This document shows positions 3,366 through 55,487 of a stretch of 64,000 nt of DNA, in pieces. Every line of letters begins with the position of its first letter. Position 1 is the stretch's first letter. The stretch covers positions 467,976,001 to 468,040,000 of the forward strand of contig NW_027362761.1 in assembly GCF_046119375.1 (NCBI RefSeq), in the 5' to 3' direction. The translations under genes and the position numbers were made by a program. The notes under the pieces are model-generated. The model was not told the DNA's origin and searched no databases. It saw only the letters and a program-made list of their open reading frames with translations. Origin of the DNA: Phyllobates terribilis (lineage: Eukaryota).

Positions 3366-3381
3366 GTACCCCCCCTTCTAA
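3366..3381 (-). other. Polypurine tract
   Basis: Minus strand TTAGAAGGGGGGGTAC directly abuts the 3' LTR and overlaps the gag-pol stop codon. Confidence 0.85.
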
Positions 3382-19900: not shown

Positions 19901-20741
19901 CAAGGTACTCCCTCAGCATCTTCCCAAACTTTGCACTCCTTGTGATAGTACCCCGCACCTCAGGGCCTGTGTGATGGGAGGGGCTGAGAAAATTCTCCAA
20001 GAACTTTGACACTGTTCCCCTGCCTCTGCTCGATTGAAGTTGTGTCTCTCTCCTGTACTACTTGGTTGTCCAATGAATTGTGACCTTTGCCGCCAGCGTT
20101 TTCAGGTGGGAATTTTTTTAATAGTTCCGCAAAAAGGGCCTTCTGGTACTGCCCCATTTTTGTAGACCTGTCCGCCTCAGGAATAAGAGATATAAAGTTC
20201 TACTTGTAGCATCGGTCTAGAAGTGTCACCAACCTGTAATGACAGTCACCCAAAATTTTGAGAACGCGAGGGTCATGGGAAAGGAAGCGTAACATACACT
20301 CAGCCAAGCATGCCAGACTGTTAACAGGCAAGACTTCGGTGCCCTCACAATGAGGATGACTGACCATGCTCTCCTACTCCTCCACTCTGTCCTCTGGCCA
20401 TCCACGCACAACAGATGGTAAGACAGTTATGCAGGTAGTACCATCTATAGCGCATGAAACAAGCTCCTGTTCTTCCTCCTCCTCTTCGTCATTGTCACCC
20501 AATCCACGTTGGGATGAGATGAGGCTGGGCTGTGTGTAATCACCCTGCATGGTTCCTTGCTCCATCTCATCACGCTTCACCTGCAATGCATCCTATTTGA
20601 TTGTGAGCAGAGAGCATTTCAGAAGAAAGAGAAGCGGGATGGTGATGCTAATTATGTTGTCATCGCCGCTCACCATCTTGGTGGAGTCCTCAAAGTATTG
20701 GAGGATGGTTTATATGTCTGACATCCATGTCCACTCCTGAG

Positions 20742-22489
20742 TAGTGCTGAGCCACCCCCGTAGTGTTCGGGTCCGTTCGTCGAATACCGGGATGTTCGTG
20801 GAACTGTTCGTCAAACACCTTAGTACACTGTCGAACCCCGTCGAACACCGTTAAAAACAGTGGCAGGCAAACAAAAACACATAAAAAACACATTCAAATG
20901 TGTCCAAAAGCTGACAAACTGCTCAGAAGACACTCTCTTTAAAAAAGCCAGCCGGCAATTCAGCATCGGTACCCGACAATTTAGAACAGAAAGAATAGAG
21001 CATCACACGTAGATTAGATAGATAGAAACATGTCAGTCACATATATAATAAGTACAGTGATAGTGTTGATTAGTGTACTTGTCATTTAGTGTTAAAATAA
21101 AGGATTTATTAAAAAAAAATTGGCGTGGGGTTCCCCGTAATTTTAGTCTCTAGCGGAGGTTAAGCAGACGGCTGGGGCAGATGTTTGAAGCCTGGGAAGG
21201 GGATAATACCCACGGAGCTTCCCAGGCTACTAATATCAGCCCCCAGCTGAATACCTAGCATTTACTAGCTATTAAAATGGGGGACCCAAAAAAAATGACA
21301 TGGGGTCCCCCCTATTTTAATAGCTAGCAAAGGCTTGGCAGACAGCTGGGGGCTGATATTAATAGCCCAGGAAGGGTGCCATGAATATTGGCCCCCTCCC
21401 AGGCTAGAAACACCAGCCCTCAGCCGCCCATAAATGGCGCATCCATAGACATCATTCCCAGCCCTATTACCCCACTGCCACCGCTACAGGGCAGTGGGAA
21501 GAGCGAGAATGTGCCAGAATTGGCGCATCAGACGGCTGGTGTTTCTAGCCTGGAGGGGGCCAGTGTTCATGGCACCATTCCTGGGCTATTAATATCAGCC
21601 CCCAGCTGGCTGCCTAGCCTTTGCTAGCTATTAAAATAGGGGGGACCCCACGTCATTTTTTTTTTGAGTCCCCCATTTTAATAGCTAGTAAAGGCTAGGT
21701 ATTCAGCTGGGGGCTGATATTAGCAGCCTGGGAAGCTCCGTGGGTATTACCCCCTTCCCAGGCTTCAAACATCTGCCCCAGCCATCTGCTTAACCTCCGC
21801 TAGCGACTAAAATTACGGGGAACCCCACGCCAATTTTTTTTTTTAATAAATCCTTTATTTTAACACTAAATGACAAGTACAGTAATCAACACTATCACGG
21901 TACTTATTACATATGTGACTGACATGTTTCTATCTAATCTATGTGTGATGCTCTATTCTTTCTGTTCTAAATTGTCAGGTACCGATGCTGAATTGCCGGC
22001 CGGCTTTTTTAAAGAGACGGTGCATGAAAACACTATTATTTTTTTTAATAAATCCTTTAACACTTAATGACAAGTAAAGTAACCAACACTGTCACTGTAC
22101 TTCTTATATATGTGACTGACAAGTTTCTATCTATCTAATCTATGTGTGATATTCTATTCTTTCTGTTGTAAATTGTCAGGTACCGGTGTATGCCGCTGCT
22201 GAATTGCCGGCTTTTCATGTTTCACAATGAGCACTGTTCCCATCGATTTGAGCAACCACTGTAATGCCACAACCACCATGGCTGTGGCATTACAATGAGT
22301 GGCAGACAATCCCTGCATGATGTGAAAAAATCCAGTTACGCTTTTGGTGCACGAACAGTTATCGAACATAACCTCGAACAGCCAAATTTTTTGCAAATCG
22401 TTCGCGTTCGTCGAACGACTCGAATACAGCCCAAAATAGCTCGAATTTGAGATTGGCGAACAGTTCTAGGCAAACACCGCTCATCTCTA
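20742..22489 (-). mobile_element. Non-autonomous hAT element (1748 bp) with family-1 ends
   Basis: TIRs TAGTGCTGAGC and TAGAGATGAGC; exact 8-bp TSD CTCCTGAG (20734-20741 and 22490-22497); terminal ~150-200 bp homologous to 44243-44440 and 56260-56402. Confidence 0.93.
20934..22017. repeat. ~1.08-kb imperfect palindrome (arms ~485 bp, loop ~115 bp)
   Basis: 20934-21418 is the reverse complement of 21534-22017, e.g. TTGGCGTGGGGTTCCCCGTAATTTTAG vs CTAAAATTACGGGGAACCCCACGCCAA. Confidence 0.92.
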
Positions 22490-25400
22490 CTCCTGAGGTC
22501 TTATGTTTGGAGTCTGAACTGAATACTGATGGCCTTGATGATGCTTGTATTCAACAACTGCCCTCTTCTGCTCACAAATCCTCCCCAACATCTGCAGTGT
22601 AGAGTTTCAATGCGTGGGGACATCACACACCAGTCTGTGAGCCGGAAGCTACAAACGCAGCTGAAAGACGGCAAGGGCGGCAGATGCTGTAGGTGACTTT
22701 CTAAAATGGGCACACAGGCGGCTTACTTCAACAACAGATCCGGCAGCTCTGGGTAGGATTTGAGAAACCGCTGAACCACGAGGTTAAGCACATGGGCCAG
22801 GCATGGTACGTGTGTGAGCTCGCCTAGCCTCAGAGCTGCCACCAGGTTCTGGCCATTGTCACACATGACCATGCCTGGCTGTAGGTTCAGTGGTGTGAGC
22901 CACAGATCTGCCTGCTCTTTCAGAGCTATCCACAACTTTTCAGCATTTTGTGGTTTGTCATCTAAGCACATTAACTTCAGCAAAGCCTGTTGCCACTTGG
23001 CCGAGGCAGTGCTGCAGTGCTTCCAGCTTGTGACTGATGTGGTCATTTCGGAGATGGAGGCTGAAGAGGAAGAGGAGGCTGAGGAGGATGAGGTGCAGGA
23101 GCTGTTGACTGTGGGGGCAACCCTAATTGACCTAGGCCCGCAATCCTTGGCATCGGGAGGATATGTCCCATCTCAAGGTGCGAGTGGGTCCCGGCTTCCA
23201 CTATGTTAAAACAGTGTGCCGTCAGCGAGATGTAACAGGCCCTGTCCACAAGCACTTGTCCACGTGTCCGTGGTTGGGTGGACTTTCCCGGTAACTGCGT
23301 TATTGATAGCATGGCTAATGTTTTAGGACATGTGCTTGTGTAATGCGGGGACGGCACACCGGGAGAAATAGCGGCGGCTGGGGATCGAGTACCGAGGGAT
23401 GGCCGCTGCCATCAGGCTGTGGAATGCTTCCATCTCCACGAGCCTAAAAGGCAACATTTCGAGTGCAAGCAGTCGAAAATGTGGGAATTTAGTAGTGTGA
23501 CCTGTGGGGCGTTGTCTGCGTATTTGCGTTTTCGTTCCAAGGTGTGGGGTATGAACAACTGAACACTGCGCTGGGACAAGGACATGGACGTGATTCCTGA
23601 TGCTGCTACTTGAGAGTGTGCAATTACAGGTGCAGGGCAGGAGGCATCTTTGCATGCACCATGGACAGGTGATTGGCTTGCATCCACAACAGTGGAAGAA
23701 GCAGTGGTGCCACCTGCAGACACTGTTCCTGGACCCTGGGGTTTGGCCCACAAAGTTGGGTGCTTTGCTGCCATGTGCCTGATCATGCTGGTGGTGATCA
23801 GGCTGCTAGTTTTGCCATTCCTGCTGATGATGTCCTGGCAGGTGGTGCAAATGGCCTTTTTGGGGTTATCGGCAGAGTCTTTAAAAAACAACCAGACTCT
23901 GGAAAACCTAACAGTTGTACTGGCAACTTCCTTTGTGTTGGCGGTACGGGGAATGGTTGCCTGCCTTCTGTCTGCGACCACCACATTGCTTCTTGCTGCA
24001 TGTTGGGGTGCTCTGTCTCCTCCCCCCTGTGTGCTGCTGTCCTCGCTCTGCATGTCCTCCTGCCAGGTTGGGTCAGTTAGTATATCATCCACCACCTCGT
24101 GTTCCACTTCCGCACCCTGGTCCTCCTCCTGACTTTCTGGCAATTGTGTCCCATCATCATCCACCTCTTGTGACACTTTCTCACCGTCGCCTTCGTATGA
24201 CCATGGCTGCTCAAATATTTGGGCATCGCTATATGCGATCTCATGCCCCGCTTCAAGTGGACCGGGTTAGAGGCCCGAATCTATAAATGTAAAATTGAAC
24301 AGCTCTTGGGAGTGTCCAAGTGTGGGATCAGTTGTCTCCGGGCACTCTGCATTTTGGGAGGAAGGAGAATCAGGGTTAGGAATATGCAGTCCAGACTCAC
24401 GGTTACTGAGACTTGACCGTGTGGAAGACAGGGTGGTGGTGATGGTGGCAAAGTGACTGGAATCATTATTTGCTATCCAATCAATAACCTTTTGACACTG
24501 CTCTGGGTTCAATAGTGGTGTGCTGCGGTCCCCTAGGAATTGGGACAGGAAAGTGGGGCGACAAGATGTGGGTGTTTGTTGTGGCACAATTTCAGCTTGC
24601 CCACGGCCTCGGCATCGGCCTCTGCATGCACCATCACCATCATGTCCAGTTCCCCTGCGCCTTGCCCATTTTAAATGGAGGACAATATCTTCCAGGCTCA
24701 CTACAAATGGCTGAATATATGGCGAACGTATATGTAATCCGTGTGATGGAGAAACCACAGTTTTAAATATCTGGCCTGTAGGTAACTATTTTGAACAGCA
24801 AACTGGTGTCAATTGATTCACTGACACACTGAAACAAATTTTTAATGGATGCCAGAAATGGCAGTATTTTCAGAACAATTATATGTGATCCGTGTGACAG
24901 ACAAACCACAGTTTTAAATAGCTGGATTTTTAGCGCTGTAATATGGAAAGGACCTGGCTGTATTCTGCAGTGCCAAGAAGCAAATGGCGTAGAACAACAG
25001 TGTTCACTGGATTGTTTTTTAAGCGAAATTTATGAGGATCCAAAAAAAAATTATTCCTGGCCCCTGAGACCTGGGCCTATTTCTAGAAATGTCTAACAGC
25101 AGCAGCAGACAAGACTGGAATGGAGCCTCTTGTGCTATGTGCACTGCAGTCTGCTATATACCCTGCATGCTTGCCTATATACCCTGCCTGATATCTCTGC
25201 AGATGGATTAGTTCGCAGAAGGACTGTTTGTAATTTAGTTTGGTACACCTACACTAACTAGAAACAAGCAAATCTCTCCCTAGCTCAGCAGCACCTCTCC
25301 CTACACTGTCTGATTCCAGAGTGACTGTGACGAGCATGGCGGCGCCAGGTCTGATATAGACCTGATGACGCTGTGCGACCAGCCAATCACTGTAATTCCA

Positions 25401-28420: not shown

Positions 28421-28691
28421 TTATGGCATTGTAAACAATGAATTAATCTCTATGTTGTGATCAATAAAGAGTATACTGTGTGCAGAATTATTAGGCAAAT
28501 GAGTATTTTGATCACATGATACTTTTTATACATGTTGTCCTACTCCAAGCTGCATAGGCTTTAGAGCCAACTACCAATTAAGTAAATCTGCTGATGTGCA
28601 TCTCTGTAATGAGGAGGGGTGTTGACTAATGACATCAACACCCAATTTAAGATGTGCTTAATTATTAGGCAACTTCCTTTCCTTTGGCAAA

Positions 28692-29708: not shown

Positions 29709-30254
29709 TTTTTGGGGTTTTTGTTTTTGCATGTCAGAAATGTTTATTTCTAAATTTTGTGCACTGATATTGGTTTACCTGGTGAAAATAAACAAGTGAG
29801 ATGGGATTATATTTGGTTTTTATTAAGTTGCCTAATAATTTTGCACAGTAATAGTTACCTGCACAAACAGATATCCTCCTAAGTAGAGATGAGCGTTGTT
29901 CTACTCGAACTGTTCGCCAATCTCAAATTCGAGCTGTTTTGGGCGGTGTTCGAGCCGTTCGGCGAACACGAACGATTTGAGAAAAATTCGGCTGTTCGAG
30001 GTTATGTTCGATAACTGTTCGTGCACCAAAATCATAACTGGATTTTTTCTCAGTAATGATGAAAATTAATGTTAATACGCAGTTTGAGTGTACAGCGGGG
30101 TGGGGGGAGGGGCAGGGGATGGATCTCTGCAGGAATAATGAAGATCTCCATTTTTTTTTCTCTTTCCCACATTTACAGTGGGGAGGTGCAATCTGTCAGC
30201 CTATCAGCAGCGCACACACGGAGCGAAGTGCTTTTTTTCACACAAGCAAGGGCA

Positions 30255-30330
30255 TGTGTCATTGGCAGTGTATGTCACATGTCCTTGCCCTATAAGACCA
30301 AGCCATTTTCCCCATCGCCACCATTTTCTC
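30255..30330 (+). promoter_or_regulatory. Candidate transposase promoter
   Basis: Reverse CCAAT (CATTGG), TATAAG, then a YY1-like GCCACCATTTT. Same arrangement in copy B at ~55960-56030. Motif inference only. Confidence 0.35.
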
Positions 30331-30796
30331 ACTGCTGCAGCTGCGTGTTAGACGGCACCGCTGTTGCTGTGTGCGCTATACCTTGTTAATTTCAAGCCAA
30401 TTTTCGCACAAATCTACAGATAGCTTGGGAGTAGGGAATAGTTGTGATTGCAGTCCTTTTAAGGACTAGGTTACAGCATTTCCTACGACTTTTATCAGGC
30501 AGGTCTGTGCTCTTAAATAGATAGGTTGTGGGAGTAAAGACTAATTGTAATTGGAGTCCTTTTCAGGACTAGGTTACATCAGTTCCTATCAGTTTTTGCC
30601 AGGCAGGTCTGTGCCAGTGCTGTGCAAGTTTTTTTCACAGCATTTGGCTGAATCTAGCAAAGCTAATCCTTTTTGGCCTATTGCAGAGTGTGTTAGTCAC
30701 TGGAGTAGCCTATCTGTGTTGCAAGATATACCACCTGTGTATAGAATACCAATTTTTTTACTGCACCTAGTGAAGTAAAATCTTTTGGGCATAGCA

Positions 30797-33700
30797 TCAT
30801 TCTATTAGTCCATCTATACTGACCTCCATCAGGTTGCAAACTGAATATAATTTTTTTCTGCATCTACCTCTGAAAAAATATTTGGGCTTCTAGCTGTGTG
30901 TGGGACTTGTTCTATTACTCCATCTATACTGACCTCCATCAGGTTGCAAACTGAATATATTTTTTCTGCATCTACCTCTGAAAAAATATTGGGCTTCTAG
31001 CTGTGTGTGGGACTTGTTCTATTAATCCATCTATACAGACCTCCATCAGGTTGCAAACTGAATATAATTTTTTTCTGCATCTAGCTCTGAAAAAATATTT
31101 GGCCTTCTAGCAGTGTGTGGGACTTTCCCTATTAGTCCATCTATACTGACCTCCATCAGGTTGCAAACTGAATATAATTTTTTTCTGCATCTAGCTCTGA
31201 AAAAATATTTGGCCTTCTAGCAGTGTGTGGGACTTTCTCTATTAGTCCATCTATTCTGACCTCCATCAGGTTGCAAACTGAATATAATTTTTTTCTGCAT
31301 CTAGCTCTGAAAAAATATTTGGCCTTCTAGCAGTGTGTGGGACTTTCTCTATTAGTCCATCTATACTGACCTCCATCAGGTTGCAAATTAAAAATAATTT
31401 TTATCTGCATCTAGCTCTGAAAAAATATTTGGGCTTCTAGCTGTGTGTGGGACTTGTTCTATTACTCCATCTATACTGACCTCCATCAGGTTGCAAATTG
31501 AATATAATTTTTTTCTGCATCTAGCTCTGAAAAAATATTGGGCTTTTAGCTGTGTGTGGGACTTGTTGTATTAGTCCATCTATACTGACTTCCATCAGGT
31601 TGCAAACTGAATATATTTTTTTCTGCATCTACCTCTGAAAAAATATTGGGCTTCTAGCTGTGTGTGGGACTTGTTCTATTAATCCATCTATACAGACCTC
31701 CATCAGGTTGCAAACTGAATATAATTTTTTTCTGCATCTAGCTCTGAAAAAATATTTGGCCTTCTAGCAGTGTGTGGGACTTTCTCTATTAGTCCATCTA
31801 TATTGACCTCCATCAGGTTGCAAACTGAATATAATTTTTTTCTGCATCTAGCTCTGAAAAAATATTTGGCCTTCTAGCAGTGTGTGGGACTTTCTCTATT
31901 AGTCCATCTATACTGACCTCCATCAGGTTGCAAACTGAATATAATTTTTTTCTGCATCTAGCTCTGAAAAAATATTTGGCCTTCTAGCAGTGTGTGGGAC
32001 TTTCTCTATTAGTCCATCTATACTGACCTCCATCAGGTTGCAAACTGAATATAATTTTTTTCTGCATCTAGCTCTGAAAAAATATTTGGCCTTCTAGCAG
32101 TGTGTGGGACTTTATTAGTCCATCTATACTGACCTCCATCAGGTTGCAAATTAAAAATAATTTTTATCTGCATCTAGCTCTGAAAAAATATTTGGGCTTC
32201 TAGCTGTGTGTGGGACTTGTTCTATTACTCCATCTACACTGACCTCCATCAGGTTGCAAATTGAATATAATTTTTTTCTGCATCTAGCTCTGAAAAAATA
32301 TTGGGCTTCTAGCTGTGTGTGGGACTTGTTGTATTAGTCCATCTATACTGACCTCCATCAGGTTGCAAACTGAATATATTTTTTTCTGCATCTACCTCTG
32401 AAAAAATATTGGGCTTCTAGCTGTGTGTGGGACTTGTTCTATTAATCGATCTATACAGACCTCCATCAGGTTGCAAACTGAATATAATTTTTTTCTGCAT
32501 CTAGCTCTGAAAAAATATTTGGCCTTCTAGCAGTGTGTGGGACTTTCTCTATTAGTCCATCTATACTGACCTCCATCAGGTTGCAAACTGAATATAATTT
32601 TTTTCTGCATCTAGCTCTGAAAAAATATTTGGCCTTCTAGCAGTGTGTGGGACTTTCTCTATTAGTCCATCTATACTGACCTCCATCAGGTTGCAAATTA
32701 AAAATAATTTTTATCTGCATCTAGCTCTGAAAAAATATTTGGGCTTCTAGCTGTGTGTGGGACTTGTTCTATTACTCCATCTATACTGACCTCCATCAGG
32801 TTGCAAATTGAATATAATTTTTTTCTGCATCTAGCTCTGAAAAAATATTTGGCCTTCTAGCATTGTGTGGGACTTTCTCTATTAGTCCATCTATACTGAC
32901 CTCCATCAGGTTGCAAACTGAATATAATTTTTTTCTGCATCTAGCTCTGAAAAAATATTTGGGCTTCTAGCTGTGTGTGGGACTTGTTGTATTAGTCCAT
33001 CTATACTGACCTCCATCAGGTTGCAAACTGAATATAATTTTTTTCTGCATCTAGCTCTGAAAAAATATTTGGCCTTCTAGCAGTGTGTGGGACTTTCTCT
33101 ATTAGTCCATCTATACTGACCTCCATCAGGTTGCAAACTGAATATAATTTTTTTCTGCATCTAGCTCTGAAAAAATATTTGGCCTTCTAGCAGTGTGTGG
33201 GACTTTCTCTATTAGTCCATCTATACTGACCTCCATCAGGTTGCAAACTGAATATAATTTTTTTCTGCATCTAGCTCTGAAAAAATATTTGGCCTTCTAG
33301 CAGTGTGTGGGACTTTCTCTATTAGTCCATCTATACTGACCTCCATCAGGTTGCAAACTGAATATAATTTTTTTCTGCATCTAGCTCTGAAAAAATATTT
33401 GGCCTTCTAGCAGTGTGTGGGACTTTATTAGTCCATCTATACTGACCTCCATCAGGTTGCAAATTAAAAATAATTTTTATCTGCATCTAGCTCTGAAAAA
33501 ATATTTGGGCTTCTAGCTGTGTGTGGGACTTGTTCTATTACTCCATCTATACTGACCTCCATCAGGTTGCAAATTGAATATAATTTTTTTCTGCATCTAG
33601 CTCTGAAAAAATATTGGGCTTCTAGCTGTGTGTGGGACTTGTTGTATTAGTCCATCTATACTGACCTCCATCAGGTTGCAAACTGAATATATTTTTTTCT

Positions 33701-35020
33701 GCATCTAGCTCTGAAAAAATATTGGGCTTCTAGCTGTGTGTGGGACTTGTTCTATTAATCGATCTATACAGACCTCCATCAGGTTGCAAACTGAATATAA
33801 TTTTTTTCTGCATCTAGCTCTGAAAAAATATTTGGCCTTCTAGCAGTGTGTGGGACTTTCTCTATTAGTCCATCTATACTGACCTCCATCAGGTTGCAAA
33901 TTAAAAATAATTTTTATCTGCATCTAGCTCTGAAAAAATATTTGGGCTTCTAGCTGTGTGTGGGACTTGTTCTATTACTCCATCTATACTGACCTCCATC
34001 AGGTTGCAAATTGAATATAATTTTTTTCTGCATCTAGCTCTGAAAAAATATTGGGCTTCTAGCTGTGTGTGGGACTTGTTCTATTAGTCCATCTATACTG
34101 ACCTCCATCAGGTTGCAAACTGAATATAATTTTTTTCTGCATCTAGCTCTGAAAAAATATTTGGCCGTCTAGCAGTGTGTGGGACTTTCTCTATTAGTCC
34201 ATCTATACTGACCTCCATCAGGTTGCAAATTAAAAATAATTTTTATCTGCATCTAGCTCTGAAAAAATATTTGGGCTTCTAGCTGTGTGTGGGACTTGTT
34301 CTATTACTCCATCTATACTGACCTCCATCAGGTTGCAAATTGAATAGAATTTTTTTCTGCATCTAGCTCTGAAAAAATATTGGGCTTCTAGCTGTGTGTG
34401 GGACTTGTTGTATTAGTCCATCTATACTGACCTCCATCAGGTTGCAAACTGAATATAATTTTTTTCTGCATCTAGCTCTGAAAAAATATTTGGCCTTCTA
34501 GCAGTGTGTGGGACTTTCTCTATTAGTCCATCTATACTGACCTCCATCAGGTTGCAAATTAAAAATAATTTTTATCTGCATCTACCTCTGAAAAATTATT
34601 TGGGCTTCTAGCTGTTTGTCTGACTTGTTCTATTACTCCATCTATACTGACCTCCATCAGGTTGCAAATTGAATATAATTTTTTTCTGCATCTAGCTCTG
34701 AAAAAATATTGGGCTTCTAGCTGTGTGTGGGACTTGTTGTATTAGTCCATCTATACTGACCTCCATCAGGTTGCAAACTGAATATATTTTTTTCTGCATC
34801 TACCTCTGAAAAAATATTGGGCTTCTAGCTGTGTGTGGGACTTTCTCTATTAGTCCATCTATACTGACCTCCATCAGGTTGCAAACTGAATATTTTTTTT
34901 TCTGCATCTACCTCTGAAAAAGTATTTGGGCTTCTAGCTGTGTGTGGGACTTGTTCTATTAGTCCATCTATACTGACCTCCATCAGGTTGCAAATTGAAT
35001 ATAATTTTTTTCTGCATCTA
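30797..35020. repeat. 110-bp tandem satellite, about 39 monomers, inside hAT copy A
   Basis: CTCCATCAGG recurs at 110-bp spacing (e.g. 32461, 32571, 32681 ... 33341); several monomer variants. Confidence 0.97.
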
Positions 35021-35136
35021 ACCCAGCCAATAGTTTTGGCCTAATACCACAGTTTGGCCACTCAGCTCTGCTCGCTTCCCATCCATTGTTTTTTTGTGCA
35101 AACAACTCCAGAGTTGTGAATTAGTTAACCACCAAA

Positions 35137-38100
35137 ATGAGTGGAAAAAGGCCTGCTGCTGGTGGAAAGGGGAATAGGCGTGTTGGGAAGGGGAAAAAAG
35201 GTTGTGTCCGTGGAGTAGGTGTTAAAGCAACAGTAACATCTGCAGAAGAAAGACCATCTTCCAGCCAAACTAAAATGTCTACTTCTTTTAGCGGACAATG
35301 TGATAAGATCCCTTTCTTACGGCCACGCCAATCGCTACAAATTCCAGATGAGGCACAAAAACAGCAGGTGCTTCAACGGATATCAAGTGCTCCTTTAAGT
35401 GGGCTCTCCTCCACATCAACTTCAACATCACAAATACTCCAGTCCTCAAAGGTGTCACCCCAATCGCACTTGCTTCCTCACAGCTCCCAAATCTCCAGCT
35501 GCCCGTCTGAGTATGAGGTAGAACAGATGGTTGAGTCTGCAGAGCTGTTTACTCATACTATAGCCTGGGAATCAGAGGTCGACTCCAGCGCTTCTGTGAA
35601 TCCAGACGAGGAAATGATCTGCACTGATGCCCAGAATCTTTATGAGTCGGATCCAGGACCAGACGCAGAAGGTTCTGACCATAATGTAGACCCTCATTCC
35701 CAAACTGTAACTCCTGTTGGTGGAGACAATGAGGAAGACGATGATGATACTCAAATACCTGATTGGAGCGACAACTTTAGTTTTTTGTCAGGGCAGGAAC
35801 AGGTTGGCTCTGAGGACGACGGGTGTGATAACGCACAGGGTGATGATGATGAGGTTGGAGATCCCACTTACTGTCAACCCACAGTCAGCCAAGAGATGAG
35901 GTCAGCAGAGGAGGTGGAGGAAGATGCTAGTGACGACGAGGTCAGGTTGCGCCTTCCTGGACAGAGACGTAGTACTGGAAGCACGTCAACAACTGCATCC
36001 TCAAACACAACTCTGCCTCTCACCACAAGTCGTGGTGGCTCTTCAGGTCGCATGGGTGCTAAGCCTTGCATAGCCTGGGCATTTTTTCAGATCGATAAAG
36101 ATGACCCAACTCGTGTTATCTGTAACATTTGTCAGCAAAAGCTAAGTAGAGGCCAAAAAATACATAGTTTGAGTACTTCATGCATGAACCGGCACATGGA
36201 CATGAAGCATAAGTTGCAGTGGGAAGCTCAGTGTGCTACAATGCGGCCTAGCTGGCCGGGCCAACCACCGTCTGCCATATCTTGTGCATCCGCGGCCTCT
36301 TCATCCTCTGTGACTGGGGGACAGCAGTCACACCTGTTTTGGGGCGCAGACCTGCCACCTCTTTACCCGCAACAGCCAGCGTGATTGGCAGGTCATCATT
36401 TTCTTTGGAGGTGGTAACACCACCTGGTGTTGAGCGCTGTCTGACATCGATAGAACCATCTTTGGATCAAGGCAACCTAACATGTCCGCCTGCATCTTCC
36501 TCACAGACCGGCAGTTTGCCGGGGACACCCTTATCAACCCCGTCTAAGCACAATAGCCAGCCCTCGGTCCCTCAGATGTGGACAAGTAAAAGACCATTTC
36601 CTCCTAGCCATGAGAAAGCTAAGAGGTTGAATTTCACCATCTGCAAGCTCTTGGCTACAGAAATGCTGCCTTTCCGCCTGGTGGACACAGAGGATTTTCG
36701 AGACCTTATGTCCGTCGCAGTGCCCCAGTACCAGATGCCCAGTCGGCACTACTTCTCAAAGAAAGGTGTGCCTGCGCTCCACCAGCATGTCGCACCCAAC
36801 ATCACCGCTTCTTTGAGAAACTCTGTGTGTGACAGGGTGCATTTCACCACAGACACTTGGACGAGTAGGGATGGACAGGGGCGTTACATGTCGCTGACTG
36901 GGCACTGGGTAACTATGGTGACAGCAGGACAAGGGGCTGCTGTCCAAGTCTTGCCGTCCCCACGAGTTGTGCGTCAATCCTCTTTATCTCAAAGTTCCTC
37001 CACTGCTTCTGCCTCCTCAACCTCCTCTCGGTCTTCCACCTGCACCCAAAGCCTGTCTGGTCATGCCACAAGCTTTCTAACTGCGCAGAAGGGATCCTGC
37101 ACACCTCCTTACTATGCTGGCAGTAGGGCTCAACGTCATCAGGCGGTTTTTACTTTGAAATGTCTGGGAAATGTGAGTCACACAGCTGAGGAGTTGTGGT
37201 GAGCTCTGGAGAACCAATTTCATGAATGGTTGTCTCCACTGGACCTGAAACCAGGGAAGGCCGTGTGCGACAATGCTGCAAACCTGGGTGCGGCCCTTCG
37301 CCGGGGCAATGTCACACACATGCCTTGTATGGCTCACTATCCCAGACTAGATGGCCTTCTGCAGAGTGCACGGTCGCTGTGTGCTCACTTCCGCCGTTCG
37401 CATCCCGCAGCTCAGCGACTTACATCTCTACAGAAGTCGTTGGGCCTGCCACTTCACCGGCTAAAATGCAATGTGCCTACCCGGTGGAATTTAACTCTGC
37501 ACATGTTGCAGCGACTGTGGCAGCACCGACAAGCCCTGGTGCAATACGTTCTGACGTATAGCCTGGGCCAACGAGATCCAGACGTGGGGCAAATCACGCT
37601 GGAGGAGTGGTCTCAGATCAGGGACCTATGCACCCTTCTGCACAGTTTTGAAATGGCGACGAAGATGTTTAGTGCTGACGATGCCATTATCAGCATGACT
37701 ATTCCGGTGATTTACATGCTGGAGCACATGTTAAACAGAATTCGGAGTCAGGTGGTGGCACAAGAGGAGGTGGAGGAAGTAGAGGAGGAGTTGTATGCGG
37801 AAGGGCTAACATCTGCAAGATCCAGACGGTCGGCAGCACCAAGGCGGCAGGCATGTGAGGTTGGGGGAGATGGTTTTACCAGGGCGCATGGTAGCAGCCA
37901 AACTAGTGAGGAAGGTGCAGGAGCCCAGGAAGAAGTGGAGGACGAACTGATGGAAGACTCATCAGATGAGGGAGACCTTGATCACATTTCTGTTGTGCGA
38001 GGTTGGGGGGAGAGGACAGAGGAAGGAAGCATGATTGTTACCTCGCCACCAACACAACACGGACTTGGTGCTCCTGGATGCGCAACACACATGAGTGCCT

Positions 38101-38798
38101 TCTTGCTGCACTACCTGCAACATGACCCTCGAATTGGGAGAATTAGAAATAATCCTGACTACTATGTTGCCACACTGTTAGATCCCCGGTACAAAAGTAA
38201 ATTTGCAGAAATTATTCCTGCCATAGAAAGGGATGCACGCATGCAGGAGTATCAGCAGAGACTGTTGCAGAATCTTACATGTGCTTTTCCACAAAACACC
38301 AGTGGTGCACGTAGTGAATCTCACAGTTCCAACTTGCCAACCGTGGGACCGTCAAGTGTTCAGCACTCAAACCATAACAGAACCACAGTATCTGCTGGTA
38401 ACATCAATTTTGCGCAATCATTTCACCACTTTTTTAGCCCATCCTTTGCAAGGCCACAGGAGACAAGAAGTCTGACACATAGTCAACACCTAGAGACGAT
38501 GGTACAGGAGTATCTCCAAGTAAACATTGAAGCCATGACTGTGTCACTGGACCCTTGCTCTTTTTGGGCTTCCAATCTGGATAAATGGCCGGAGCTAGCC
38601 ACTTACGCCATGGAGATCTTGTCATGCCCCGCAGACAGCGTTCTGTCTGAACGTGTGTTCAACACTGCTGGTGGTGTGCTGACAGATAAGCGCACGCGGC
38701 TCTCCACTGATAATGTAGACAGACTCACGTTCATAAAGATGAACAAATCATGGATCCGAAACGACTTTTCTACCCCTGTGTCATCCTGGGGAGAGTAA
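35137..38798 (+). pseudogene. hAT transposase, copy A (disrupted)
   Basis: Collinear with the copy B ORF, but with G5 instead of G6 at ~36316 (frameshift), TGA at 37200-37202 and a 36-bp deletion after CMAH. Confidence 0.95.
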
Positions 38799-38829
38799 AA
38801 GATGGATGATTGGTTAAAATCACCCTACC

Positions 38830-39118
38830 AACCGTTTTAAGCATTCAAATTACTAATCATGTTTATCTGTATCTTGGCTGGAAAATAATTTGGGCTTTGT
38901 AGCAGTGTGCAGCACTGATTCTATTAGGCCATCTATAATAAGCTCCACCAGATTTAAAATTACTAATCATGTTTATCTGTATCTTGGCTGGAAAATAATT
39001 TGGGCTTTGTAGCAGTGTGCAGCACTGATCCTATTAGGCCATCTATACTAAGCTCCACCAGATTTAAAATTAATAATAATTTTTAGCTGCATCTAGCCCG
39101 GAAAATAATTTTGGGGCT
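38830..39118. repeat. Diverged 110-bp monomers 3' of the transposase
   Basis: About 2.6 units related to the 5' satellite (TAGCAGTGTG, CTATTAGGCCATCTATA, GCATCTAGC). Copy B (48500-48680) has one unit fewer. Confidence 0.8.
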
Positions 39119-39231
39119 CCGAGATGCGCAAGACACATAAGTGCCTTCTTGCTGCACTACCTGCAACATGACCCTCATATTGTCAGAATTCGAAGTAATC
39201 ATGACTACTGGGTTGCCACACTCTTAGATCC

Positions 39232-40607
39232 GCCAAACTTTTCGATCAACCTTTTCATTTTAATAAAGACCAAAAAAATGGTCATTTTTGAAATTATAAG
39301 CATTAGCAGGTTATTAGAAACTGAAGTCAAACAGTTTTCAACTCAAAACTTTATTCTAGGTGATGTAACATTTTCACATAGGACCCCTTGTTCGAAAGGA
39401 GCTTCTGAACTCTCTCGTCCATTGAATTTGTCAGGTTTTGGATGGTTTTTGCTTCAATTGTTTTGCATGAGGACAGAATACCCTCCCAGAGCTGTTGCTT
39501 AGATGTGAACTGCCTCCCGCCATCATAGACACTCCTTTTGATGATACTCCAGAGGTTCTGAATGGGGTAGAGGTCAGGGGAGCATGGGGGTCACACCATA
39601 AGTTTGTCCCCTTTTATGCCGATATCAGCCAGAGATGCAGATGTTTTATGTGCAGCATGAGATGGTGCATTATCATGCAAAAAATTGATCTTGCTGTGAA
39701 TTACACGGTTCTTCTTCTTGAACCATGGCAGGAAGTGCTGTTTGAGAAAATCCACATACTTTATGGAGTTCATCTTTAGCGCCTTCAGGGATCCTAAAGG
39801 GGCCGACAATCTCTCTCCCCATGATTCCAGCCCAAAACATTACTCCACCTCCTCCTTGTTGGCGCTGTAGCCGTGTTTGCGTGGGGTGTCCATCAACCAG
39901 CCATCCTCCACTCCATCCATCTGGACTATCGAGCGCTGCACGGCACTCATCCGTGAACAAAACAGTTTTGAAATCAGTCTTCATGTAATGTTTGGCCCAC
40001 TGGAGCCGTTTCTGCTTGTGTGAAGTGGATAGAGGAGGTCGACAGGATGGCGTATGCACAGCTGTAAACCTCTGAAGGACCCTGCATCTTGTTGTTCGGG
40101 GGATGTTGGAGGCACCAGCAGCTTCAAAAACTTGTCTGCTGCTATGACAAGGCTTTTTTGCCGCTGCTCTTTTAACCTGACGTAATTGCTTGTAGGAAAG
40201 AGTCCTCAATTTGCCCTTATCAGCACGCACACGTGTGTACTGTGAATCAGCTACATACTTCTTGATTGCCAAGACACTTCATCCTGATCATCGCACAATG
40301 TTGATTGTAGTCATGCCTTGACCTAAACACTCCACAATTTGTTGCTTCTCAGCAGCCGACACATCCTTTTTCTTTCCCATTTTGGCAGAAAATGTAGGCT
40401 GCTTAATAATGTGAGACAGCCTTCTTAAGTAGTCGTGCCTTTCATTGGACACACCTGCCAAACTAATTAGCACAGGTGTCTGCAATTGCTTACAGTGATA
40501 TAAAGAGCCCTGACACACATCACCATCAATGAGTTTAACTGACAAACAAACAAATTCTTCCCTTATCACTCCTAAACACTTTTTGCATAATAATTTGGAA
40601 CACAGTG
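39232..40607 (-). mobile_element. Cargo Tc1-like DD37E element in copy A, one TIR lost
   Basis: TIR CACTGTGTTCCAAATTATTATGCAA at a TA (40608-40609); MGKKKDVS, FTDECR, HDNAPSH with D-37-(E/Q) spacing; other end truncated. Confidence 0.88.
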
Positions 40608-40689
40608 TACATGTGCTTTTCCACAAAACACCAGTGGTTTACGTAGTGAATCTTACAGTTCTAACTTGCAACCGTGGTCTGTATGGAGT

Positions 40690-41250
40690 TGTTCAATAAA
40701 GGGCCCAAAATTAAGATAACATAGATGGGAGAGGTCTCTATGAATAGGAATTCCTAAGTATTTGATACCCTGTGAGGGCCAGGCAAAGGGAAAGTTGGAC
40801 TGGATGGAATCCTATATGGATTTGGGGAGGGAGACATCGAGGGCCTCAGACTTCGCTGCATTGATTTTAAAATTTGACCATGTAACAAAGTGATCTATTT
40901 CAGCCATAACAGCATGGATGGATATATGTGATTGAGTGATATATACTAGGACATCATCAGCAAATAGAGAGCACTTGTACTCTGTGCCTCCCACCTCAAT
41001 CCACCTAATATTGGGGTTATGGCGAATTGATGAGAGCAGGTGCTCCGTCACTAGGATGTATAAGAGAGGGCACAGAGAACATCGCTGCCTTGTCCCATTG
41101 GTGATTGTGAAAGGTGATGAAAATGTTCTGACGCGCCCCCTGGGCCTTGGGACACCCAGAGCCGGACCCTTTTTGGTGGATGCTGGTGGTTGTAGTCTCC
41201 GTGGCGGCGACCCGGTTCCGTGGCTCAGGGCGGTCAAACCAGTGGCGGAA
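40690..41250 (-). pseudogene. Cargo L1/Tx1-type reverse transcriptase fragment in copy A
   Basis: FSSPFTITNGTRQRCSLCPLLY...SLFADDVLVY...FKINAAKSE; the B copy reads GTRQGCPLSPLLY. Confidence 0.88.
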
Positions 41251-41257
41251 CTATTTA

Positions 41258-42341
41258 TGTGGTTTTGATGTTTAAATGTCCGACAACGCCACCCGTGGAT
41301 TGTGGTCAGAGTGAACCGCCGTTCCAGGGCAGACCGCTGAGGCTGGTGTTGTGGGTGCAGCAGAGCGTAGCATAACTCCCCACGGGAGGAGTATAGCCTC
41401 AGGGCAGTGTATGCGGAGGATGGGGGTGATGGTGCAGGGCAGCAGCAGTAACGACACGGAGTCAGTGATGCAGTCCAGGGCCTTTACTCACAGTTCTTAT
41501 TATCCAGACCACGTCTGCAGGTAACGGCTGCCCACGTCGTACTGTGCTCACCAGGTGAGGGCTCAGACAACTCCCAGATAACTTTGGAGCGCTTCACAGG
41601 ACCCCCTTTGTGTGTCCTTTGTCTGGCCTTTCTTACCAACCCTTCTGTCCGGCTGCCTCGGGCCTCCTCTTGGTAAACTTGGCGCCAGTTTCCCTGACCC
41701 TATGTGGTGCCTTCCTAGCGGGTGTAGCGAGGGGCTGCGCCACATAAAATGTCACAGCCTCCGGTTTCTAGCTGAGGGTCGTTTCCTGCCTCCACTAGTT
41801 TCGGGGACCGGTCTCCCCCTTTTGCCTGACCCCTCCACGCAGGTGGATTCGGGCGTGCGGTGGCGACTCGCCCGTCCGCACCCCTGGGATCCCTTCATTC
41901 CTCATTCCTGGAGCCTTCTCCGCTCCTCTTCCTTCCTTCTCCCTCTTCCAGGCCTGGGCCTCTGTTACTAGGCCCGCCTCCGGAGCAGAGCTCATGCAGA
42001 GCCCCTGCTCCCTGCCACTTCTGCTCAGACTTCTCTGCACTGAACTAAGATGGTGCCCACCTTTTATACTCCCTTCTCAATGCACCCAGGAACTTCTTCC
42101 TCCCTGCTCCTGCACTACAGGGTTCCCCTTCCTCAGTGTTCCCTCCCCCCACTCCAGCCAGGGACAGGGACTGTCGTGCCCATCTCAGGGGCATATTGGT
42201 CGCCCTGCCCCACGGCAATGTGGTGTAATGCATGCAGGTGTCGGGTCCTGATCCACACTCCATCCTTACCTGAGAGTGAGATATCACACCTCTGGGTGAG
42301 GTGCAATACCTCTGTAGCAACCGAGCCCTCAGGGTGCTACA
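41258..42341 (-). mobile_element. Cargo LTR-like segment (possible solo LTR) in copy A
   Basis: TGT...ACA termini, internal TATAAAAGG on the minus strand, no ORF homology. No TSD found and the left boundary is uncertain. Confidence 0.45.
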
Positions 42342-42616
42342 GTTCCATTTATCTTCAGCCTAGGTGACGTATTGCGATACAGGGCCGTGATTTTGGCTAT
42401 AAAAGGGTCCCCAAGACCCCTACCCAAAGCTTTTTAAGAGAATCATATATGGCGTGCCAGGAGACTCTATGGAATGCTTTCTCAGCATCCAACGAGAGTA
42501 TCTAATTACAAATTTTTAACTGCATCTAGCCCAGGAAATACTTTGTGCCTAGTAGCAGTGTCTGCTAGTCAGCGGATTATCCCGGCTGTTAAGCAAGCTA
42601 CACCACCTGTAGTTTT

Positions 42617-42883
42617 GACACTTAATTTTTTCAAAGGAAATGCTTCGGGACCACGGGATACTCAGTGAAGAGCATCAGGAGGCACCCCAAGGCATAGGGG
42701 CTGGGACTGGCAGTAGGATGCCTTGCGGTGGACAGCCGAGCTCGATCCTTATAAAAGCTTTTTAACTGCAGCAGCTTTAGTGGACGCTACTGGAGCTGGA
42801 ATTACGCGGCTGCTGGCATGAGACTTGCCCTCCAATAGATCCTTGTAAATGGATTTAAAGTGTATTCATTCAAATTTGAGAGA
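42617..42883 (-). pseudogene. Decayed 18S rRNA gene fragment (helix 18 / V4 region) in copy A
   Basis: Reverse complement reads TTGGAGGGCAAGTCTCATGCCAGCAGCCGCGTAATTCCAGCTCCA...TGCAGTTAAAAAGCT...CCCGAAGCATTTCCTTTGAAAAAATT, collinear with vertebrate 18S as I recall it. Confidence 0.9.
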
Positions 42884-44743
42884 CAATTTAAATTAAAAAG
42901 CTTAGAGCTGCCTCCACCACAGGGGGGCTCGCTCGACCCACCCGCGGACAGGCACCAGTATTGGGAGAGCGGGGCTGGCCGTCAGGGTTCACCGCGGCTC
43001 TGGCACAAACCCGGCGACACGAGGTGGCACGGGCAGGAGCGGACTGAACGTGTCGGCTTCTCACTTTTTGTATTTTAGAAGGGCATGACATGCCTATATC
43101 TGTGTCTCCCCCTCCTTTTACTCCTCCACCTCTTTTCTTTTCGCATGACTATATGTACTTGTCACTTTTCCATGTGTTTGTTGTTGGGTCTTCAGAGCAG
43201 TTTGTCAGCTTTTGGACACCTTTGAAGGTGTTTTCTATGTGTTTCTATGTGTTTTTGTTTGCCTGCCATTGGTTTTAACGGTGTTCGAAGGTGTTCGACG
43301 AACAGTTCGACGAACAGTTCGGCGAACACACGGGTGTTCGACGAACCGAACCGAACTCGAACACTACGGGGGTGGCTCAACACTACTCCTAAGATAGCCA
43401 AATCTAAAAAAAAAAACACTCCAACTACCAAAAATATTAAGCTTGGATATTTATGAGTCTTTTGGGTTGATTGAGAACATAGTTGTTGATCAATAATAAA
43501 AATAATCCTCTAAAATACAACTTGCCTAATAATTCTGCACACAGTATATATGCAAATCTTTTGGCAGCCGGTTTTCTTTAATGAAATATAACCATACCTA
43601 TATTCAATTTTTTTGGGGGTTAAAATAAAGGTCTTGCATGATGACAACTATATGCACTTTCAATTCATCACAAGAGAAATGGCATCACAACAACCAGACA
43701 GAAGTATCACATTTTTTAAAAATTTTTTTAAAAAGTTTACATACATTTCATTAGTATTTGGTACCACTGCCCTTAAACTGAATAACTTGGGTCAAACATG
43801 TGGGATATCCTTCCACAAGCTTCTCACAACAGTTGGTCAGAATTTGGGCCCATTCCTCCTGACAAAACTGGTGTAACTGATCCAGGTTTGTAGGTCACCT
43901 TGATCGCACCTGCCTTTTCATCTTTGCCCATAAATTTTCAATAGGATTGAGATCAGTACTTTGTGATGGCCACTCCACAAAATTGACTTTGTTATCCTTA
44001 AGCCACTTTCTTGCCATTTTGGCAGTATGCTTCGGGTTATTGTGCATTTGGAAGACTCATTTCTGCCCAAGATATAACTTCCTGGCTGATGTCTTGAGAT
44101 GTTGCTTCAGTATTGCCGCATAATCTTCTTTTCTCGTGATGCCATCTATTTTATGAAGTACACCAGTCCATCCTGCAGCAAAACAACCCCACAACATGAT
44201 GCTGCCACCCCCGTGTTTCACAGTTAGGATGGTGCTCTTAAGTAGTGTTGAGCCACCCCCGTAGTGTTCGAGTTCGGTTCGGTTCGTCGAACACCCGTGT
44301 GTTCGCCGAACTGTTCGTCGAACTGTTCGTCGAACACCTTCGAACACCGTTAAAACCAATGGCAGGCAAACAAAAACACATAGAAACACATAGAAAACAC
44401 CTTCAAAGGTGTCCAAAAGCTGACAAACTGCTCAGAAGACACAACTAACACATGGAAAAGTGACAAGTACATATAGTCATGCGAAAAGAAAAGAGGTGGA
44501 GGAGTAAAAGGAGGGGGAGACACAGATATAGGCATGTCATGCCCTTCTAAAATCCAAAAAGTGAGAAGCCGAGACGGCCAGTCCGCTCCTCCCCGTGCCA
44601 CCTCCGTGTCGCCGGGTTTGTGCCAGAGCCGCGGTGAACCCTGACGGCCAGCCCCCCTCTCCCAATACTGGTGCCTGTCCGCTGGTGGGTCGAGAGAGCC
44701 CCCCTGTGGTGGAGGCAGCTCTAAGCTTTTTAATTTAAATTGT

Positions 44744-45009
44744 CCCTCTAATTTAAATGAATACACTTTAAATCCATTTACAAGGATCTATTGGAGGGCA
44801 AGTCTCATGCCAGCAGCCGCGTAATTCCAGCTCCAGTAGCGTCCACTAAAGCTGCTGCAGTTAAAAAGCTTTTATAAGGATCGAGCTCGGCTGTCCACCG
44901 CAAGGCATCCTAGTGCCAGTCCCAGCCCCTATGCCTTGGGGTGCCTCCTGATGCTCTTCACTAAGTATCCCGTGGTCCCGAAGCATTTCCTTTGAAAAAA
45001 TTAAGTGTC
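44744..45009 (+). pseudogene. Decayed 18S rRNA gene fragment in copy B
   Basis: CACTTTAAATCC...TTGGAGGGCAAGTCT...GCCAGCAGCCGCGTAATTCCAGCTCC...GATGCTCTT...TTTGAAAAAATTAAGTGTC. Confidence 0.9.
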
Positions 45010-45284
45010 CAATCTACAGGTGGTGTAGCTTGCTTAACAGCCGGGATAATCCGCTGACTAGCAGACACTGCTACTAGGCACAAAGTATTTCCTGGGCTAG
45101 ATGCAGTTAAAAATTTGTAAGTAGATACTCTCGTTGGATGCTGAGAAAGCATTCCATAGAGTCTCCTGGCACGCCATATATGATTCTCTTAAAAAGCTTG
45201 GGGTAGGGGTCTAGGGGACCCTTTTATAGCCAAAATCACGGCCCTGTATCACAATACGTCACCTAGGCTGAAGATAAATGGAAC

Positions 45285-46366
45285 TGTAGCACCGAGGGCT
45301 CGGTAGCTACAGACGTATTGCACCTCACCCAGAGGTGTGATATCTCACTCTCAGATAAGGATGGAGTGTGGATCAGGACCCGACACCTGCATGCATTACA
45401 CCACATTGCCGTGGGGCAGGGCGACCAATATGCCCCTGAGATGGGCACGACAGTCCCTGTCCCTGGCTGGAGTGGGGGGAGGGAACACTGAGGAAGGGGA
45501 ACCCTGCAGTGCAGGAGCAGGGAGGAAGCAGTTCCTGGGTGCATTGAGAAGGGAGTATAAAAGGTGGGCACCATCTTAGTTCAGTGCAGAGAAGTCTGAG
45601 CAGAAGTGGCAGGGAGCAGGGGCTCTGCATGAGCTCTGCTCCGGAGGCGGGCCTAGTAACAGAGGCCCAGGCCTGCAAGAGGGAGAAGGAAGGAAGAGGA
45701 GCGGAGAAGGCTCCAGGAACGAGGAATGAAGGGATCCCAGGGGTGCGGACGGGCGAGTCGCCACCGCACGCCCGAATCCACCTGCGTGGAGGGGTCAGGC
45801 CAAAGGGGGAGACCGGTCCCCGAACTAGTGGAGGCAGGAAACGACCCTCAGCTAGAAACCGGAGGCTCTGACATTTTATGTGGCGCAGCCCCTTGCTCCA
45901 CCCGCTAGGAAGGCACCACATAGGGTCAGGGAAACTGTCGCCAAGTTTACCAAGAGGAGGCCCGAGGCAGCCGGACAGAAGTGTTGGTAAGAAAGACCAG
46001 ACAAAGGACACACAAAGGGGGTCCTGTGAAGCGCTCCAAAGTTATCTGGGAGTTGTCTGAGCCCCTCACCTGGTGAGCACAGTACGACGTGGGCAGCCGT
46101 TACCTGCAGACGTGGTCTGGATAATAAGAACTGTGAGTAAAGGCCCTGAACTGCATCACTGACTCCGTGTCGTTACTGCTGCTGCCCTGCACCATCACCC
46201 CCATCCTCCGCATACACTGCCCTGAGGCTATACTCCTCCCGTGGGGAGTTATGCTACGCTCTGCTGCACCCACAGCACCAGCCTTAGCGGTCTGCCCTGT
46301 AGCGGCGGTTCACTCTGACCGCAATCCACGGGTGGCGTAGTCAGACATTTAAACATCAAAACCACA
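45285..46366 (+). mobile_element. Cargo LTR-like segment in copy B
   Basis: Reverse-complement homolog of 41258-42341. Confidence 0.45.
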
Positions 46367-46374
46367 TAAATAGT

Positions 46375-46930
46375 TCCGCCACTGGTTTGACCGCCCTGAG
46401 CCACGGAACCGGATCGCCGCCACGAAGACTACAACCACCAGCATCCACCAAAAAGGGTCCGGCTCCGGGTGTCCCAAGGCCCAGGGGGTGCGTCAGAACA
46501 TTTTCATCACCTTTCACAATCACCAATGGGACAAGGCAGGGATGTCCTCTGTCCCCTCTCTTATACATCCTAGTGACGGAGCACCTGCTCTCATCAATTC
46601 GCCATAACCCCAATATTAGGTGGATTGAGGTGGGAGGCACCGAGTACAAGTGCTCTCTATTTGCTGATGATGTCCTAGTATATATCACTCAATCACATAT
46701 ATCCATCCCTGCTGTTATGGCTGAAATAGATCACTTTGTTACATGGTAAAATTTTAAAATCAATGCAGCGAAGTCTGAGGCCCTCGATGTCTCCCTCCCT
46801 AAATCCATATAGGATTCCATCCAGTCCAACTTTCTCTTTGCCTGGCCCTCACAGGGTATCAAATACTTAGGAATTCCTATTCATAGAGACCTCTCCCATC
46901 TATGTTATCTTAATTTTGGGCCCTTTATTG
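46375..46930 (+). pseudogene. Cargo L1/Tx1-type RT fragment in copy B
   Basis: ORF 46387-46749: GTRQGCPLSPLLY...LFADDVLVY. Confidence 0.88.
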
Positions 46931-47017
46931 AACAATTCCATACAGACCACGGTTGGCAAGTTAGAACTGTAAGATTCACTACGTGAACCACTGGTGTTTT
47001 GTGGAAAAGCACATGTA

Positions 47018-48393: not shown

Positions 48394-48716
48394 GGATCTA
48401 AGAGTGTGGCAACCCAGTAGTCATGATTACTTCGAATTCTGACAATATGAGGGTCATGCTGCAGGTAGTGCAGCAAGAAGGCACTTATGTGTCTTGCGCA
48501 TCTCGGAGCCCCAAAATTATTTTCCGGGCTAGATGCAGCTAAAAATTATTTTTAATTTTAAATCTGGTGAAGCTTATTATAGATGGCCTAATAGGATCAG
48601 TGCTGCACACTGCTGCAAAGCCCAAATTATTTTCCAGTCAAGATACAGATAAACATGATTAGTAATTTGAAAGCTTAAAATGGTTGGTAGGGTGATTTTA
48701 ACCAATCATCAAGCTT

Positions 48717-52223: not shown

Positions 52224-52334
52224 TTTGGTGGTTAACTAATTCACAACTCTGGAGTTGTTTGCACAAAAAAACAATGGATGGTAACCGAGCAGAGCTGAGT
52301 GGCCAAACTGTGGTATTAGGCCAAAACTATTGGC

Positions 52335-55300: not shown

Positions 55301-55487
55301 TTTCAGAGCTAAATGAAGAAAAAAATTATTTTTAATTTGCAACCTGATGGAGGTCAGTATAGATGGACTAATAGACCAAGTCCCACACACTGCTAGAAGC
55401 CCAAATATTTTTTCAGAGCTAGATGCAGAAAAAAATTATATTCAATTTGCAACCTGATGGAGGTCAGTATAGATGGACTAATAGAAT
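52335..55487. repeat. 110-bp tandem satellite, about 29 monomers, inside hAT copy B
   Basis: CCTGATGGAGG at strict 110-bp spacing; reverse complement of the copy A monomer family with the same array boundaries. Confidence 0.97.

Follow-up and report, generated by a model that had tools for sequence, protein, structure and literature searches.

A 110-bp satellite-like array as a probable passively transposed internal block of a large hAT transposon of the anuran Phyllobates terribilis

Two copies (A and B) of a large hAT DNA transposon, located in a 64,000-nucleotide stretch of the Phyllobates terribilis genome (NCBI RefSeq assembly GCF_046119375.1, contig NW_027362761.1, positions 467,976,001 to 468,040,000 of the forward strand; hereafter the window, which contains no N), each enclose an array of a 110-bp tandem repeat, 4.3 kb long in A and 3.2 kb in B. 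The array probably constitutes a block of non-coding tandem repeats inside a large autonomous anuran hAT element and is passively moved when the element transposes. Its monomers stand head to tail and are homogenised within each array, as in satellite DNA, and it occupies a fixed site inside the ends of both copies with a copy number that varies between them (39 vs 29), as in transposon-borne arrays. An earlier note on this DNA had counted about 39 and 29 monomers with equal array boundaries; the counts have been confirmed by two programs and the junctions match at both ends. Its placement of the array between the 5′ end of a hAT element and the transposase gene, as a block dispersed by transposition, stands as well: the element is found at two sites, each with its own target site duplication (TSD) and unrelated flanks.

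Tandem Repeats Finder (TRF) delimited array A at 30800-35020 (period 110, 38.6 copies, 93% matches, score 7224) and array B, on the opposite strand, at 52340-55485 (period 110, 28.6 copies, 94% matches, score 5739), and an nhmmer search with the 110-bp unit recognized 39 units in A (30801-35055) and 29 in B (55485-52304). Array A (30800-35055, plus strand) is built of units of 106-110 bp, the last being 34954-35055, and array B (52304-55485, minus strand) of units of exactly 110 bp except the last one (52304-52406). The last unit of either array is normal in its 5′ part and diverged in its 3′ half, and this diverged half is the same in A and B. The two copies have the same junctions between the array and unique DNA on the 5′ and 3′ sides, and from the last unit through the linker to the ATG they agree at 181 of 187 bases. 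The array begins 917 bp from the 5′ end of the element and stops 81 bp before the transposase ATG (35137 in A). The units contain stop codons in every frame, and the longest open reading frames (ORFs) in them span 32-56 amino acids. No significant match to the unit was detected in the 37 kb of flanking DNA that the window holds outside both elements. Scans of metagenome contigs with an exact 30-mer and a degenerate 34-mer gave 0 matches, and a full-text literature search with words of the unit returned no relevant match. The array edge and first units matched nothing in Rfam at E≤1, and derivation of the unit from a small RNA gene, as known for the 5S-derived PcP190 and for Xenopus satellite 1 derived from a tRNA short interspersed element, finds no support in the same search.

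The carrier elements were delimited by self-comparison of the window, in which 29882-43394 and 56404-44236 appeared as inverted copies of each other. Copy A (29884-43385, plus strand) is 13,502 bp long and flanked by the TSD CTCCTAAG, read directly at 29876-29883 on the left and 43386-43393 on the right; copy B (44243-56402, minus strand) is 12,160 bp long and flanked by CTTAAGAG as read on its own strand, i.e. CTCTTAAG on the plus strand, read directly at 44235-44242 and 56403-56410. The terminal inverted repeats, TAGAGATGAGC and TAGTGTTGAGC, are 11 bp long and match at 9 of 11 positions. A third member of the family, C (20742-22489, minus strand), is a non-autonomous derivative of 1,748 bp between copies of the TSD CTCAGGAG (20734-20741 and 22490-22497); its two ends share 90% and 79% identity with those of A and it has no 110-bp units. 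The TSDs of A, B and C are all perfect, 8 bp long and of the form nT....An, which is the pattern of the Ac group. The family thus combines the hallmarks of hAT elements: 8-bp TSDs, short terminal inverted repeats with reiterated subterminal motifs, and a transposase with BED and dimerisation domains. Its mobility is documented by three insertions with distinct TSDs and by the reconstructed empty site of B.

Both array-bearing copies reside, in opposite orientation and 841 bp apart, in one Tc1/Sleeping-Beauty-like element, to which the spacer between them belongs (43394-44234, minus strand). In-silico removal of B together with one TSD copy joins its flanks into a 246-amino-acid open frame of Tc1/Sleeping-Beauty type spanning the junction, and the two flanks of A are colinear with the terminal region of another (paralogous) Tc1 copy at 28472-28675. 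On all four sides the homology between A and B stops precisely where the hAT element ends, and the flanks on the outer and inner sides are unrelated to each other. Since the homology ends at the termini, the removal of B restores the Tc1 frame and the flanks of A follow the Tc1 sequence, A and B are two real, separate transposition events within one Tc1-like element. Local hops are favoured by hAT elements such as Ac/Ds and Tol2, and by analogy the proximity of the two copies most likely reflects such a hop.

An arrangement with arms forming a 12-13 kb inverted repeat around a spacer of only 841 bp could also arise as an inverted segmental duplication (a palindrome) or as an assembly artefact, and the TSDs of A and B differ at just one of eight plus-strand positions. 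We consider this origin extremely improbable in view of the end of homology at the hAT termini on four sides, the perfect 8-bp TSD of each copy, the lack of relation between outer and inner flanks and the Tc1 frame that is restored by deletion of B. The similarity of the TSDs is explained by target preference, as the third member C has a TSD of the same pattern. The copies also differ: outside the arrays they are 98.25-98.27% identical (1.75% divergence) with 13 indels, and the arrays are wholly different. The near-perfect inverted pair of 12-13 kb as such (29884-56402, with the 841-bp spacer) has been kept long enough for this 1.75% divergence to accumulate. It is a likely rearrangement hotspot, and read-through of it would yield a long hairpin RNA, a situation resembling maize Mu killer and a possible built-in silencer of the family.

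Comparison of individual units revealed how differently the two arrays have evolved. The mean number of differences per 110 bp is 9.2 between the arrays vs 7.8 within A and 6.2 within B, and the nearest neighbour of a unit in sequence belongs to its own array for 37 of 38 units of A and all 28 of B. Pairs of units from A and B differ at a minimum of 3 positions, and identical units are common within each array. Among 34 recurrent minor variants 18 are private to A, 13 are private to B and 3 are common to both. Since the arrays share only these 3 of 34 recurrent variants, the array of each transposon copy was homogenised separately after the split and constitutes its own unit of concerted evolution. 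By a rough estimate about 40 new mutations per array are expected over the divergence at normal mutation input, so that rapid unequal exchange or slippage suffices for the observed pattern. Plotted by lag, the identity between units has maxima at 7 and 12 units in array A and one at 13 units in array B; a regular higher-order repeat, considered in view of a 437-bp TRF period, was rejected, as these maxima mark block duplications.

These data show the following course of events. Because the same junctions are present in both copies, the common ancestor of A and B already carried an array at this position. Once the copies had separated, each array was remodelled independently, acquiring private variants and duplicated blocks of 7, 12 or 13 units, so that A now has 39 units and B 29. 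The remodelling may have been effected by unequal exchange, by slippage during replication or by repair synthesis.

The same note had derived the array from the expansion of a subterminal repeat. The motif GTTCG/CGAAC is packed in the terminal ~140 bp of the element, with a 5′ subterminal cluster at 29884-30030 (plus strand) and a counterpart at 43280-43385, and its density of 30-40 per kb in the terminal 300 bp vs 0.3 per kb inside represents a ~100-fold enrichment; these are the presumed transposase-binding repeats. The 110-bp unit contains no GTTCG/CGAAC, and the distance from the end of the element to the array is 917 bp. As the true subterminal motif is absent from the unit, the proposed derivation fails; judging by its sequence, the 110-bp unit is not an expanded subterminal repeat and the array appears to belong to the upstream (leader/promoter) region of the transposase gene. 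The array is presumably a by-product without a role in transposition, as the related non-autonomous copy C moved without an array and the unit has no terminal binding motif.

Relatives of the unit were found at three further places within the element, in the same orientation throughout, so that the transposase ORF is tightly framed by the repeat family. Directly 5′ of array A about 1.5 degenerate edge units occupy 30640-30799 (plus strand; z 5-8 vs shuffles, and z 11 when compared with the half unit at 42511), and a profile match to the unit marks their equivalents in B at 55495-55646 (minus strand). Just upstream of the edge units, at 30425-30640 (mirrored at 55672-55860), there is a separate 103-bp duplication (1.8 copies, 82% matches) with no significant relation to the 110-bp unit. 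On the other side of the gene, 28 bp past the stop codon, a 3′ block of three tandem diverged units begins in A (38826-39129, plus strand), its units being 72-75% identical to the array consensus (E 3e-6 to 6e-17). The corresponding block of B (48496-48689, minus strand) lies 3′ of the transposase and has two diverged units, one less than in A, so that copy number differs between the copies here too (3 vs 2). Since the sole AATAAA after the stop codon is found further downstream, at 39262, the 3′ block probably lies within the 3′ untranslated region (UTR). The third place is an isolated half unit (unit columns 50-103, E 6e-7) at 42511-42564 (plus strand), mirrored in B at 45062-45115 (minus strand), which adjoins a rearranged 18S ribosomal RNA (rRNA) fragment. 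An origin of the unit as a ribosomal DNA spacer repeat, considered because of this neighbour, was rejected, as the half unit abuts an internal 18S position and not the spacer side. The diverged single monomers reported previously at these 3′ locations are thus real relatives of the unit, but the first of them is a set of three tandem units and the second only half of one.

Several points weigh against the reading of the array as a native, passively moved block. Array-bearing copies number two, and the array lengths rely on correct assembly. Starting from a short ancestral array, A and B may each have undergone an expansion of their own, and transposition would then spread seeds and not multi-kb arrays. 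The composition of the array sets it apart, with a CpG observed/expected ratio of 0.02 vs 0.5-0.6 in the rest of the element and a GC content of 37% vs 44%; outside the arrays, CpG context accounts for about a quarter of the substitutions between A and B. In its 3′ third the element holds fragments of foreign sequence common to both copies: the 18S rRNA fragment (42573-42936, minus strand, inside A and also present in B, where Rfam places it at 44723-44842), a reverse transcriptase (RT) fragment (40812-41237, mirrored in B) and a Tc1-type helix-turn-helix (HTH) fragment (39673-40272, mirrored in B). Finally, a regulatory role is conceivable; the last unit contains a TATAA at 35000, which precedes the ATG by 137 bp.

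As both copies share the foreign fragments, what was mobilised already had a composite structure that included captured or nested DNA, and the array itself might have been acquired in this way: the hAT element would have picked up a pre-existing 110-bp satellite, e.g. by template switching in gap repair, and the satellite would be the source and not the product. The nearly CpG-free, AT-rich composition of the array and the acquisition of foreign DNA by the 3′ region of the element fit such a capture, and in the part of PMC12628747 devoted to the Xenopus element miDNA4 the capture of a pre-existing repeat has been proposed. We regard it nevertheless as rather unlikely for the 110-bp unit. Relatives of 72-75% identity are present at three other sites of the element in the same orientation, members of the family come within 81 bp of the ORF on its upstream side and within 28-45 bp on its downstream side, the 5′ array edge grades into degenerate units, and no unit occurs outside the elements in the 37 kb of flanking DNA. 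Long residence is favoured by the relic units flanking the ORF on either side, by the graded 5′ edge and by the lack of units outside the elements, and we lean modestly towards a unit family that has long resided in the transposase transcription unit and is no recent capture. The idea that the unit is native to the element is upheld to that extent by the relic units, while the contrast in CpG and GC content and the foreign fragments leave capture as the competing origin.

A role of the array in the life of the element would provide another reason for its maintenance. The repeats could act as a reiterated promoter or enhancer, shield the transposase gene as a CpG-free buffer, or give rise to small RNAs that regulate the element, and would be kept for that reason. 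Such a role is suggested by the short distance of 81 bp between the array and the ATG, the TATAA-like box and A/T tracts of each unit, the TATAA of the last unit 137 bp upstream of the start codon, the lack of CpG in the unit, and the repeat family forming also the region right after the stop codon. Against such a role, copy number and sequence vary freely between A and B, a TATAAG and an acceptor-like site (35111) permit gene models with the array as a leader or as an intron, and the non-autonomous copy C does without the array altogether. A functional array seems improbable to us on this account, and passive carriage within the upstream region remains the preferred interpretation. The array as a 5′ intron was considered separately and is weakly supported, since the acceptor-like site at 35111 has no consensus donor to match it in 29884-30799.

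The autonomous character of the carrier is indicated by copy B, the transposase ORF of which (48717-52223, minus strand) is intact and encodes 1168 amino acids with a zf-BED domain (Pfam, 3.5e-10) and a hAT dimerisation domain (Dimer_Tnp_hAT, 1.9e-14). The product aligns with Hermes transposase (E 3e-19), with conserved residues in the stretches CDNAANL, CMAH, PTRWNST and SERVFS, which would hold the second catalytic D, the CxxH, the W and the catalytic E of Hermes; the first catalytic D falls outside the aligned stretches. Its relatives are anuran ZBED4/ZBED6-like proteins (34-51% identity), and Ranitomeya imitator has an exonised piece of 55 amino acids that is 89% identical to the B transposase. 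In a contig of an ENA assembly encoding a 51%-identical transposase the similarity is restricted to the coding sequence and no tandem repeat was found in the 684 bp upstream.

The corresponding gene of copy A (35137-38798, plus strand) is a pseudogene: 1 bp is deleted after 36315, and the TCA of B corresponds to a TGA stop at 37200-37202. Relative to B, the A sequence has in-frame length differences of +21 bp (35220-35240), -36 bp (37334/50045) and +171 bp (37671-37841). The 171-bp difference spans an 18-bp repeat detected by TRF (37750-37788), length change being tolerated in that part of the protein. The two ORFs differ by 6 synonymous and 37 non-synonymous substitutions (ratio 1.9), differences that look neutral, as expected of neutral decay after insertion.

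Tandem arrays carried by transposons are already well documented, and the locus described here adds an unusual carrier, namely a vertebrate hAT that is both large and autonomous and has an intact transposase. The monomer of miDNA4 is reportedly ~119 bp long and forms arrays of 2-47 copies. miDNA4 of Xenopus (Scalvenzi & Pollet 2014) is, according to the sections of PMC12628747 and PMC9659126 that deal with it, a Tc1/mariner miniature element with a satellite motif present singly or in arrays. From the same sections it resembles the hAT copies A and B in being a frog DNA transposon with terminal inverted repeats and an internal tandem repeat of variable number that is mobilised by transposition; it differs in being a non-autonomous Tc1/mariner element of ~330 bp, whereas A and B represent an autonomous hAT of 12-13.5 kb with an intact transposase and the array upstream of the gene. 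FEDoR of Rana temporaria, an element of ~3.5 kb without an ORF and with internal arrays of a 22-bp repeat that is also found in some free, partly pericentromeric arrays, is likewise a dispersed frog DNA element with TSDs, inverted repeats and internal blocks of tandem repeats (PMC12054243). Unlike A and B it is unclassified and ORF-less, and its 22-bp unit is unrelated in sequence to the 110-bp unit.

The number of repeats in the UTR blocks of the plant elements Ogre and Atenspm varies between copies. Tandem repeats are described, in the passages of PMC9659126 on these elements, in the 3′ UTR of Ogre/Tat long terminal repeat (LTR) retrotransposons (PisTR-A) and the 5′ UTR of the En/Spm-like Atenspm (ENSAT1); as in A and B, an autonomous element carries a tandem block in the UTR beside its coding sequence, and the plant blocks are linked there to satellite families. 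The plant elements belong to other classes or superfamilies and have demonstrated free satellite arrays, whereas both arrays seen in the window lie inside copies of the present element. A direct route from transposon to satellite, which the note proposed, would be a further, conjectural step. Satellite-like tandem repeats are also carried by oyster Helitron/Helentron elements and by the foldback element Tetris. Repeats of this kind in the Helitron-type DINE-1/PERI are cited in PMC12628747. Helitron/Helentron and foldback elements share with A and B the capacity to scatter short tandem arrays able to seed satellites, but they use a rolling-circle or foldback mechanism and, unlike A and B, the carriers are mostly non-autonomous. 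An autonomous hAT example is absent from the reviews PMC12628747 and PMC9659126, and hAT elements go wholly unmentioned in the former (2025).

Most examples linking class II transposable elements with satellites concern small, non-autonomous elements, and the direction of origin has usually been argued from consensus sequences. Here, sister copies at 1.75% neutral divergence have almost no array variants in common, which gives a direct measure, within one genome, of how much more rapidly an array turns over than the unique DNA that surrounds it, each transposed copy becoming an independent unit of concerted evolution. The locus is useful as a guide to repeat annotation in large frog genomes and as a case on which array dynamics can be tested; it introduces no new principle. 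It is conceivable, though a bold and doubtful proposition, that a vertebrate hAT which still appears competent employs a self-homogenising 110-bp array for the region upstream of its transposase gene and, with every insertion, seeds a mini-satellite that evolves independently. If this were true, and if large free (e.g. pericentromeric) arrays of the same unit exist in this frog, the birth of a satellite from an autonomous DNA transposon could be followed with source, intermediate and product together.

The window contains other repetitive elements. Member C has a long internal inverted repeat and interrupts the coding sequence of another hAT to which it is distantly related, the transposase gene of which (19479-24176, minus strand) it splits into a part with the dimerisation domain (19479-20012) and a part with the zf-BED domain (23412-24176). 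This second transposase is 28% identical to that of B in its N-terminal part, and no tandem array adjoins it. At 3378-7445 (minus strand) an uninterrupted ORF of 1355 amino acids encodes a Ty3/gypsy gag-pol polyprotein with protease, RT, RNase H, integrase and chromodomain, possibly a young intact retrotransposon of the chromovirus type; the best named matches of the protein are from dendrobatid frogs (50-60% identity). Two short tandem arrays lie outside the hAT elements, one at 63119-63562 (89 bp, 5.0 copies, 72% matches) and one at 24-286 (137 bp, 1.9 copies).

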